Origin: Macrostomum lignano | Lineage: Eukaryota | DNA: 61,508 nt | Reading direction: 5' to 3' | NCBI GenBank assembly: GCA_002269645.1 | Contig: NIVC01001821.1 | Location: forward strand, 1 to 61,508 | Shown: piece by piece, positions 83 through 14,998 of the stretch | Numbering within the stretch: the first letter of the stretch is position 1 | Layout: every line of letters starts with the position of its first letter | Program-made: the position numbers and the translations under genes | The notes under the pieces: model-generated | The model's database searches: none | Seen by the model: only the letters and a program-made list of their open reading frames with translations | Told to the model about the DNA's origin: nothing

Positions 83-3000
83 TCAGCATTTAATACATAG
101 ATTAACCGCAGATAAACTTACAATAATGAAGATGACGAGAAGCAGTAAGAAGCCGCCGCCCAAACAGCAGACCAGCACAATAAGGGTCAGATAGCTGGGA
201 CTGCTGCCGCCGCCGCCGCCGCCGACACCGCCGCCACCAGGCTGCTGCTGAGTCGTGGAAGCCAGCGGTGCCGTCGACATTTTGGTTGCAGAAGTTGAAG
301 TCGGACTCGGCGTGGACAAATCTGCGGATTTTTCGGGATGGAAACAGTTTGTTAAAAAGAACAGCTGGACAGAGGAGCAAAGTATCTCGACTCCGTCTGC
401 GGCCATATTAACTTGGGTCTCGTGTGCGAAAACTGACTTAGGTTAGGTCTTGTCGTGCAATTCTCACCCACGAGGGCCAACCCCAAGGCTCAGTATGTAC
501 ATGCTTGACGATGAGAAAGTCAGGGCCGCTGTACAGCCTGTGTGTGTGTGTGTGTGTGTGTGTGCTCAAGAATCTGCTGCCAGCAGGTCGACTGTCGCCT
601 TTATTTGCATCATCGCCCAAAGCTTGCAGAGATCGGCAGGCTGATTCATACTGCCAGGCCAGGGCATCGTCCACAAGCCAGGATTCTGCTTTTGAACCGA
701 CCAAAAACTTTACCGCTTTGCCTATACTATCCTACCAGCCTGTGTGTAGATAATTAGCTCTTGTAACGAATGAAGAGTACTGTTGCACTTTACTAAACTG
801 CATAGTTCAATAAATTTGCAATTTATTGATTTCCAAACGTTGTGCTTCATACAGTTCTTACCTGGCGAGCCAACACTATCGATAACAATGCCTCCAAGCT
901 CCATAGTGCTGAGACCTTTTTGCAATAAGCTGAGCAGGGTCGCCGCCGTGTTGGTGGGGCTGTCCCGGACAACAAGATAAAAGGTTGCCTTGACGCTGCC
1001 CTCAGCAAAAACGATGTTAACCACATCCTGCAGCTCTAAATAGAGATCAGTCTGTCTAGCTGCTGCCATTATGGTCTCAACGAGATAGTTCGACAGCTGC
1101 TTGTATCGCCAAGTACCTGCGTTTAGATATTCGTTGAACCATTGCATATTGGCGAAACGCAGGCTCATTTTTATGGCCTTTACTCGCGGAAACACTGGCT
1201 GGTAATTTGTTGGACAAATGCACGCAGTTGTCGCGCTGGGGACTGTAGTCGTAGTCATGGTTGTTGTTGAAGTTGTAGTCGGAGTAGTTGTAGTTGTTGT
1301 TGGTGTAGTAGTTGTTGTGGGTGTGGTGGTAGTTGTGGGTGTGGTAGTTGTTGTGGTGTGGTGTAGTTGTTGTGGGTGTGGTGGTAGTTGTTGTGGTGTG
1401 GTGGTAGTTGTGGGTGTGGTGGTAGTGTGTGTGGTGGTAGTGTGGTGGTAGTTGTTGTGGGTGTGGTGGTAGTTGTTGTGTTGGTGTAGTTGTTGTGGTG
1501 TGGTGGTAGTTGTTGTGGGTGTGGTGGTAGTTGTTGTGGGTGTGGTGGTAGTTGTTGATGTTGTAGTACTACTTTTAGTCGATGATGTACTGCCTGTTGT
1601 TGGTGTTACTAGGGTAGTTTTAGTCGAAGTTGTAGTCGGTGTAGTTGTACTTTTCGTAGTTGTAGGCGTTGTAGTTGCAGTTGTAGTCGTTGTTGTGGTA
1701 CTTGTGACGCACACGGGATTAATCGGCGCAAAGCAGCCTACGATTTCTAAATAAGTTTCAAAATTTGATTTCGACTCTGCGTACGACTTCAGCGCTCTTG
1801 GGGTGACAGTAAACTCGGCCACTTGAAAACCAATGGTGTAGCACAGATCCCTGCCAAAGACATCATTTGACAGAGACAGAGACGATGTAAGGGTTTGGAA
1901 CAGGACTGTCTGTCTGTACTGAATCGTAGCTTCCTTGATGTTTCCTGATAGACAGATCTAAAAAGAATCGTTTGGATTCGAGCAGTCTTGAGAATAAAAC
2001 CCTTGTTTTCTATAAAAAGTTCGCATTGTTGCACGAAAAACTCTAGGGAATTACCCGATCAACGTAGATAGCGGATCTGCAGTTTCTAGCTGTGAGGTCG
2101 ATCGCTAGCCGACCGCCGCCCGTCGTGCTAATGCTAAAGCCTATGGCGTCGTTGTATGCATCGTGGCCAGATATGAACTGCATTGGTAGATACTCCAGCC
2201 GGGATAGTGCGTTTACCAATGGGCAGACTGAAAATTTGTTGAAGAAGGGCGCCCTGAGTTTTCGCAATTGAAAATGTTTAATGGGTCACTACTTTGAAGA
2301 TAATAATTGAACAGCTGATCTCGCGGTCACCTGGCAGGCGACTTGCTAAAGGTTGAATTGTTAAGGTTCAAGGCCATCTGTTTTAAGCAAGTCTTATCTG
2401 CTAGCTAAAAAATCTACGAGCGTATCTTCTTTCACCTTCCGTCACCCTAACATTCCCATTTTGGTTCCGATGGCCCTCTGCAGCTCAGAATGCCAGAGGT
2501 TGTACAAACGTTAAATTCAATTTTTTCTTACAAGTAGAAGTGAAAGTGGTTGTTGTTGGCGTTGTTTGAGTCGTAGTCTGAGTTGTAGTGGTAGTTGAAG
2601 TTGTTGGCGGTAGACAGACAGGTAAGGGACTAAAGCAGCCGTTTATTGAAAGGTAGAACTGAAACACCGTAGTAGAGTTATCTGACGATTTCGGCTCCCC
2701 AGGTGCAATAATGACAGTGTGCACGTCGAAGTTGAAGGTGTAACACAGCACTCCCGGCGTGTCAAGTGTGGCAGTCTCAGATTCTTTTAGCAAGGAAAAT
2801 CCACCAGTCAACGCCATCCTGTAGTACAAATTTGACTGCTTCACATTGCCGCCCGTCATGCAGACCTGAAATGTTTAACGAATTGTTTTGATTATTAGCG
2901 TCCCAGAATGAAGTTTATGGAAAACATGATCGAAACTCACCGAGAAAACGTAGGTCGGCGCTCGACAGCCGTTAGCTGTCAAGTCTACTGTCAGGAATTT

Positions 3001-14998: not shown

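Follow-up and report, generated by a model that had tools for sequence, protein, structure and literature searches.

The locus at the left end of contig NIVC01001821.1 of the flatworm Macrostomum lignano (assembly GCA_002269645.1) raises the question of what kind of domain is repeated along it and what that domain does in the encoded protein. The window, by which we mean the whole 61,508-nucleotide (nt) contig that was analyzed, carries on its minus strand a gene in which a six-cysteine module alternates with proline-, threonine- and serine-rich (PTS) blocks of mucin type. An earlier note on this DNA, made from its letters alone, had proposed that the module is an unannotated and highly diverged relative of the discoidin, or F5/8 type C (F5/8C), domain. 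The explanation that we favor is that the modules are a lineage-specific six-Cys subfamily of discoidin barrels, set in a tethered mucin, where they would act as binding or cross-linking sites of the glycocalyx. Taken as a whole, we give this statement a little better than even chances; the fold and the architecture by themselves we hold with high confidence, and a ligand-binding function of the modules, with glycans as the most likely ligands, is put forward tentatively, at somewhat less than even chances.

Scanned in all six frames with a profile of the copies, the whole window proved to contain 13 modules and no more; they all lie on the minus strand, from 13879 to 1709, and in leave-one-out scoring each copy reaches 100-144 bits. 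The array had previously been given a lower bound of 1760, which trims the last 17 codons of the thirteenth copy, and a module length of ~130 aa; the bound is corrected here to 1709, and the length to 133-142 aa in the 13 aligned copies. The proposed count of 13 copies with six Cys is borne out by the scan and by the Cys counts, since every copy contains exactly six (78 of 78 Cys positions intact). Ten columns are invariant across the array (C1, P14, C45, C56, G59, N60, C96, P110, C133 and C141), D39, R46 and F134 are nearly so, and the alignment returns the consensus proposed earlier (C-x-V-N-G-L..YIP..AI.G / L.IDLT..GCR / CL.GNV / LCY / Y.FY.SI.GCF.PLP..C). The copies are very diverged, as had been stated, with pairwise identities of 23-43% (mean 32%). 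Numbered in the order of transcription, they are:

13454 to 13879, minus strand: M1, 142 aa, intronless; the most divergent copy, with CLS in place of CR after Cys2
12436 to 12931, minus strand: M2, exons 12931-12770 and 12684-12436, with an 85-nt phase-0 intron and a weak donor, GTAGAC
11069 to 11576, minus strand: M3, exons 11576-11406 and 11320-11069, 85-nt intron
10172 to 10751, minus strand: M4, exons 10751-10584 and 10417-10172, 166-nt intron
9335 to 9733, minus strand: M5, 133 aa, intronless
8582 to 9004, minus strand: M6, 141 aa, intronless; the copy used for the AlphaFold2 model
7838 to 8431, minus strand: M7, exons 8431-8267 and 8083-7838, 183-nt intron
6929 to 7693, minus strand: M8, exons 7693-7532 and 7189-6929, 342-nt intron
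5144 to 5647, minus strand: M9, exons 5647-5480 and 5389-5144, 90-nt intron with a GC-AG donor, GCAAGT, at 5474-5479
4230 to 4796, minus strand: M10, exons 4796-4632 and 4478-4230, 153-nt intron
3537 to 4052, minus strand: M11, exons 4052-3888 and 3788-3537, 99-nt intron
2614 to 3102, minus strand: M12, exons 3102-2941 and 2865-2614, 75-nt intron
1709 to 2225, minus strand: M13, exons 2225-2055 and 1957-1709, 97-nt intron

A phase-0 intron thus interrupts 10 of the 13 modules after the motif GCRxxxxxxx (all but M1, M5 and M6), and a second recurrent intron lies one codon before Cys1 in 9 of the 13. The two positions are homologous between copies, which indicates that a two-exon unit was duplicated to form the array and that some introns were lost afterwards.

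The fold of the module was predicted by running AlphaFold2 on M6 with the 13 copies as the sole alignment. The resulting model is all-beta, with a mean predicted local distance difference test (pLDDT) of 95.5 and a predicted template-modelling score (pTM) of 0.88. Comparison of such a model with known structures by Foldseek was the check proposed together with the fold assignment, and when the M6 model was searched against the PDB the top matches were all F5/8C-type barrels, namely chitosan-binding and GH89 CBM32 modules, IFT25, neuropilin b1 and the discoidin domain of CASPR2 (E 4e-4 to 3e-3, template-modelling (TM) score 0.46-0.57, probability 1.00). Pfam groups CBM32 and IFT25 in one family with the discoidin domains.

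A second line of evidence comes from relatives of the module in other eukaryotes. The profile of the 13 copies, compared with 1.84 billion representative proteins, gave only 19 matches at E <= 1e-3, the best of them entries from M. lignano itself. Those outside flatworms were a 'mucin-2-like' protein of the chiton Liolophura sinensis (XP_064614628.1, P0006), a protein of the annelid Dimorphilus gyrociliatus with TIL, VWC and cystine-knot-like ends (CAD5117735.1, P0014; E 1e-5) and eukaryotic metagenome proteins. Among the metagenome proteins P0011 is the cleanest, with one full-length domain at E 1e-10; P0018 matches at E 2e-4, and the very low E value of P0006 is the sum of seven near-identical repeats of ~20 bits each. 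A word-indexed protein search gave no match for the 13-copy alignment and only five short metagenome proteins for a broad alignment. The relatives outside flatworms have two Cys only, equivalent in the alignment to Cys1 and Cys5; the four other Cys were seen in M. lignano proteins alone. Profiles of the six-Cys and two-Cys forms nevertheless align with each other by hhalign over 134-136 columns at a probability of 98.4-98.9% (E 7e-15 to 3e-16).

The two-Cys form provides a link to classical discoidin domains. The model of one member, P0028 (pLDDT 93), matches the b1 domains of neuropilin-1 and -2, the discoidin (DS) domain of DDR2 and CASPR2 with TM scores of 0.67-0.76, and lactadherin C2, retinoschisin and one factor VIII (FVIII) entry with TM scores of 0.60-0.64; over all its structural matches, E values range from 3e-8 to 3e-5 and identities from 12 to 20%. 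Cys1 and Cys5, the only Cys common to the six-Cys and two-Cys forms, are matched by hhalign to the two Cys at the ends of FVIII C2, and we infer from this homology that they would form the canonical discoidin disulfide, by which the N- and C-termini are joined. Furthermore, in two eukaryotic metagenome proteins, P0019 (128-242 and 292-413) and P0023 (171-285 and 340-452), a true PF00754 domain stands directly before a copy of the two-Cys module. Further along these two proteins, PTS blocks alternate with other small Cys-bounded modules.

Several observations weigh against a discoidin assignment. The six-Cys model reaches TM scores of only 0.5-0.57 to solved discoidin-type domains, which implies that the barrel of the module is trimmed or distorted. 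P0028 is tied to the modules of the window through P0006, P0014 and P0018 and not directly, the 13-copy profile giving it 13 bits. No Pfam family, PF00754 (gathering score 28.2 bits) included, matches the three intronless modules or the two-Cys relatives at E <= 10; the same scan does find the true F5/8C domains of P0019 and P0023 and misses the module copies beside them. Sequence and profile searches of the PDB returned no discoidin chain: a single module and an 18-sequence profile gave nothing, and the 13-copy profile gave only one chance-level match, to a kinase (E 0.19). The PROSITE patterns FA58C_1 and FA58C_2 match none of the 13 modules and do match the FVIII C1 and C2 controls. Finally, when compared directly by hhalign with a small F5/8C alignment, the profiles match it weakly (probability 8-22%, P 2e-4 to 1e-3). 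A search meant to collect F5/8C sequences gave a single protein, and this alignment therefore consists of four sequences, FVIII C1 and C2, which are 100% identical to PDB chains, and the F5/8C domains of P0019 and P0023.

The same comparison does bear on the resemblance that had been claimed between the ends of the module and those of F5/8C domains. The six-Cys profile gives a global alignment that stays colinear between the first Cys and the terminal ..GC, with a score of 19.1 (P 0.0012, probability 8%), 59 column shuffles scoring 1.6 +/- 2.3 with a maximum of 9.3, and the two-Cys profile aligns with P 2e-4 to 9e-4 and a probability of 22%. The pairings are first Cys with first Cys, IDL with WLQVDF, I.I.P with RYLRIHP and ..GC with EVLGC. 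The order of the motifs is consequently reproduced, and it is the strength of the alignment that falls short. By sequence criteria, then, the module is not a member of PF00754, and the earlier description of it as unannotated agrees with the Pfam result; at the level of fold, the M6 model and the classical discoidin matches of the two-Cys homologues support the assignment proposed. The module is best described as a trimmed F5/8 type C β-barrel with putative extra disulfides, and not as a new kind of domain; as modelled, it has a discoidin-type fold, is very probably of discoidin descent and stands as a separate subfamily.

A different descent would make the likeness convergent, the module being a variant of another Cys-rich β-sandwich such as CUB or CysD, or an unrelated CBM-like jelly roll. 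The weak sequence links to PF00754 speak for it, as do the jelly rolls of SUN, CBM6, CBM29 and laminin-N domains lower in the Foldseek list of M6, and one M. lignano paralogue is automatically named 'CUB domain-containing protein' in UniProt. The automatic names of the paralogues, however, contradict one another (ZP, PKD, REJ, CUB and DUF3707), and Pfam supports none of them in the paralogue models that were scanned (P0003, P0004, P0008 and P0009). With the classical discoidin matches of the two-Cys homologues and the conserved terminal Cys pair also against it, we regard a descent outside the discoidin domains as very unlikely. A strong match to CysD or CUB, which the earlier note had named as evidence to the contrary, was looked for in Pfam and among the top 50 structures, and neither family appeared. 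CysD (Mucin2_WxxW) was rejected on the six Cys and the lack of WxxW in every copy, together with the missing matches in Pfam (E <= 10 for the modules, E <= 1 for the paralogue models) and among structures. CUB (PF00431) was rejected because Pfam does not match it to the modules (E <= 10) or to the CUB-named paralogue (E <= 1); the neuropilin structures matched are of b1, the discoidin domain, and include single-domain b1 entries.

The modules belong to a gene that occupies 86-14998 of the minus strand. When exons were joined by enumerating donor and acceptor pairs under frame constraints, 22 exons gave one uninterrupted frame of 3,115 codons (~9.3 kb spliced) with no stop. Twenty of its 21 introns are GT-AG, and the GC-AG intron of M9 is the only other one. 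The architecture is a signal peptide, a PTS block, 13 repeats of module plus PTS linker, a probable SEA domain, a Gly-rich stretch and a transmembrane helix, and the elements other than the modules are:

14968 to 14998, minus strand: exon 1, with the ATG at 14998, the first 10 signal-peptide codons and the donor GTAAGA
14668 to 14880, minus strand: exon 2, with the remaining signal peptide, a short Cys-containing stretch and the first PTS block
1184 to 13453, minus strand: PTS linkers, between the modules and after M13, Thr/Ser/Pro-rich, of mucin type and in frame with the flanking modules
863 to 1183, minus strand: probable SEA domain, from a Pfam SEA match, with a GSVKA (G-SVKA) motif at 1000-986
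122 to 193, minus strand: transmembrane helix, in the last exon within the window (321 to ~119)

The signal peptide and the single transmembrane helix were recognized by inspection of the translation. An 87-nt intron interrupts the signal-peptide-like sequence, and a TATAAAAG box lies ~150 nt upstream of the ATG. The second intron, of 786 nt, directly follows exon 2 and holds an (AGAC)n microsatellite of ~135 copies (14050-14588), which accounts for spurious 'CLSVCLSV' open reading frames. The 12 inter-module PTS linkers measure 28-114 aa and are 74-95% Thr, Ser and Pro, several of them sharing an exon with the end of one module and the beginning of the following one; Thr makes up 26.7% and Ser 11.2% of the whole protein. 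In the last PTS block, ~47 codons rich in His, Asn, Gln and Tyr replace the Thr-rich frame at 1358-1498 (minus strand), after which the Thr-rich frame resumes. This stretch is enclosed in a tandem array (Tandem Repeats Finder, TRF; 1271-1557) with 15% indels, which suggests compensating indels, either real or due to assembly errors.

The SEA match (E 3.3e-5, 24.4 bits) falls under the gathering score of 26.4, and the region gave only chance matches among PDB sequences; its GSVKA motif falls where SEA mucins have their G|SVVV autocleavage site. A GTAAGT donor after the transmembrane helix indicates that a cytoplasmic tail lies beyond the left edge of the window. One public model of the locus, P0001, goes on with YAVYSRRMRSDLKQ... 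after the helix, and YAVYSRRMRSDLKQ is absent from the window. On its predicted features the protein is a membrane-tethered mucin of M. lignano, probably of SEA type, of ~3,100 aa.

How old the array is can be judged from a paralogue, L001, on contig NIVC01003964.1 of the M. lignano assembly, which has the same design with nine modules. Seven of the nine find their best matches in M2 to M8, in the same order, at 45-56% identity against 26-44% to the other copies; the eighth is a near-duplicate M4-like copy that sits after the first module, and the first ties M1 and M13 at 36%. The conserved order and these identities indicate that the array and the individuality of its copies predate the gene duplication, and no sign of homogenization was seen. 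Together with the identities of 23-43% within the array, the conserved order supports the old duplication that the earlier note had offered as one cause of the divergence. Within L001 itself, two M4-like modules (2813-3297 and 7501-7985) are nearly identical, through a recent internal duplication or an assembly artifact, and two modules at 9067-9796 contain frame breaks, through indel errors of the long-read assembly or decay.

Such irregularities are what a decaying or non-expressed repeat, whether pseudogene or annotation artifact, would display: frame breaks in the paralogue, a wandering frame in the last PTS block of the window gene, and public gene models of the locus that are fragmentary and inconsistent. 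Against this stand a spliced frame of 9.3 kb free of stops with regular introns, the full set of Cys positions, intron positions conserved between copies and a module order conserved in L001. The high pLDDT obtained from an alignment of the copies alone likewise implies that constraints on the fold have been maintained. Decay consequently appears extremely unlikely to us.

The other cause suggested for the divergence, diversifying selection on binding loops, did not find support. Column entropy among the 13 copies is 1.79 in predicted strands and 1.98 elsewhere, so that variation is not concentrated in loops, and comparison with L001, the sole paralogue usable for the ratio of nonsynonymous (dN) to synonymous (dS) divergence, gave dN ~0.47 with dS saturated in all but one segment.

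This even spread of variation also bears on function, as it would be expected if the modules shared the discoidin fold and bound no ligand. They would then be structural, protease-resistant, disulfide-locked knots that segment the PTS bottle-brush, or would make homotypic contacts as proposed for CysD domains, with no lectin activity. A purely structural role of this kind is the main rival to a binding role, and it also accommodates the trimmed barrel, the lack of any recognizable known sugar-binding motif and the placement of the modules between PTS blocks, like that of CysD domains. The copies, however, have long been kept individually distinct, with positional counterparts in L001, which exceeds what a generic spacer needs, and both the Foldseek matches and established knowledge describe a superfamily that is overwhelmingly ligand-binding. 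We therefore consider a structural role without binding rather unlikely.

The discoidin barrel also suggests how the modules might be displayed. Because the discoidin clamp joins the N- and C-termini, each barrel would dangle like a knot from the extended, O-glycosylated mucin axis, its far-end loops pointing away and free. The remaining four invariant Cys may form two extra disulfides that stiffen the trimmed barrel, and the modules would split the stiff PTS rods into segments. In the wider superfamily the distal loops bind sugars, lipids, collagen or peptides. The modules could thus make multivalent contacts within the glycocalyx, by binding or by cross-linking, in analogy to the function of CysD domains; we propose this role because the loops of discoidin and CBM32 domains bind ligands and because in gel-forming mucins it is CysD domains that break up the PTS regions. 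Likely ligands would be glycans of neighboring mucins, or of microbes or particles. A stronger form of the proposal seems to us unlikely: the six-Cys modules would be a Macrostomum-specific family of lectin-like barrels, every one of the 13 keeping a specificity of its own over a long time, and the mucin would be a membrane-anchored, multivalent 'reader' of glycans. If it were true, such a reader could capture microbes or particles, cross-link the glycocalyx to itself or mediate surface adhesion and release, and would be a solution to the same architectural problem that is independent of the vertebrate CysD.

Comparison with known systems places the module more precisely. With the F5/8C domains of factors V and VIII (C1-C2), neuropilin (b1/b2), DDR1/2 (DS), lactadherin, retinoschisin, CASPR2, hemolectin/hemocytin and bacterial CBM32, of ~140-160 aa, it has in common the β-barrel jelly roll, a Cys at the start and a G/A-C near the end for the clamping disulfide, colinear motifs and an occurrence in spiralian mucin-like proteins (P0019 and P0023). 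It differs in being shorter, in lacking the conserved Trp of classical discoidin, in four added invariant Cys (CR after the IDL strand, xCLxGNV, LCY and the C-terminal Cys) and in its setting, 13 times between the PTS blocks of a probable SEA-type transmembrane mucin and not beside VWD/TIL units. The two-Cys spiralian family, likewise absent from Pfam, has the same invariant GN(V) hairpin, IDL strand and terminal Cys pair and is also associated with PTS blocks, but it carries an insert with a conserved 'RP.G.GW' and belongs to secreted proteins that have TIL, VWC and cystine-knot-like ends.

The CysD domains of MUC2, MUC5AC and MUC5B have the same architectural role, as compact, disulfide-rich modules that interrupt O-glycosylated PTS regions. 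They measure ~110 aa, contain ten Cys and a WxxW motif, and occur in secreted VWD mucins and not in SEA-type transmembrane mucins. With MUC1, MUC3, MUC12, MUC13, MUC16 and MUC17 the window gene shares a signal peptide, long PTS regions, a probable juxtamembrane SEA-like domain with G-S-V and a single transmembrane segment. Vertebrate mucins of that type carry EGF-like or SEA repeats, and to our knowledge none has discoidin-like modules inside its PTS region.

Three public entries, A0A1I8G2V1 (P0001, 'Membrane-associated protein'), A0A1I8HYN9 (P0002) and A0A1I8HA14 (P0030), are models of the window locus or of near-identical copies. In P0001 and P0002 the PTS blocks are spliced out along with the last β-strand (Cys5 and Cys6) of most modules, and PTS sequence is translated out of frame in places; both models look mis-spliced, and we consider them so. 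A Pfam scan of P0030 gave no match. A literature search returned no description of the gene or of the module, nor of F5_F8 domains in a SEA-type transmembrane mucin, and the known adhesive proteins of M. lignano, ap1 and ap2, have different domains.

The rest of the window holds other genes and repeats. A Ty3/gypsy-type long terminal repeat retrotransposon (18747-25328, minus strand) has three large open reading frames, coding for a gag with zinc knuckle and aspartyl protease, a reverse transcriptase with RNase H, and an integrase whose frame extends into a 29-nt tandem repeat (18873-19142). A run of N, marking an assembly gap, lies at 26947-27358 in an AT-rich stretch (GC content 0.26 over 26001-28000). 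On the plus strand lie a Trithorax/MLL-like gene (29186-34929) with a PHD-like zinc finger, FYRN and a C-terminal SET domain (E 1.6e-25), a flavin amine oxidase fragment (47377-48267, E 1e-37) and a sodium:solute symporter spread across several exons (51342-54347). The minus strand carries a universal stress protein (57885-58376, E 7e-28) and, at 44312-45106, an open reading frame of Gly/Tyr/Pro/Gln-rich repeats (PGYGAPPQ...) with a 42-nt tandem period at 44646-44944.

The locus does not present a new kind of system and addresses no long-standing open question. What it provides is a domain family annotated in no library, seen in its six-Cys form only in M. lignano and in its two-Cys form in chiton, annelid and eukaryotic metagenome proteins, together with a link from this family to the discoidin fold. 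For M. lignano it corrects the public gene models, and the function of the gene is open to experiment because in situ hybridization and RNA interference are routine in this animal. F5_F8 domains are reported to be characteristic of the VWD-type mucin-like proteins of lophotrochozoans (PMC4948705), and the present family extends that tie. The mucin design itself, tethered, with a probable SEA domain and with PTS rods broken 13 times by discoidin-like barrels, is one not described for vertebrates, and for the evolution of mucins it offers a second, independent case of globular Cys modules within PTS regions.

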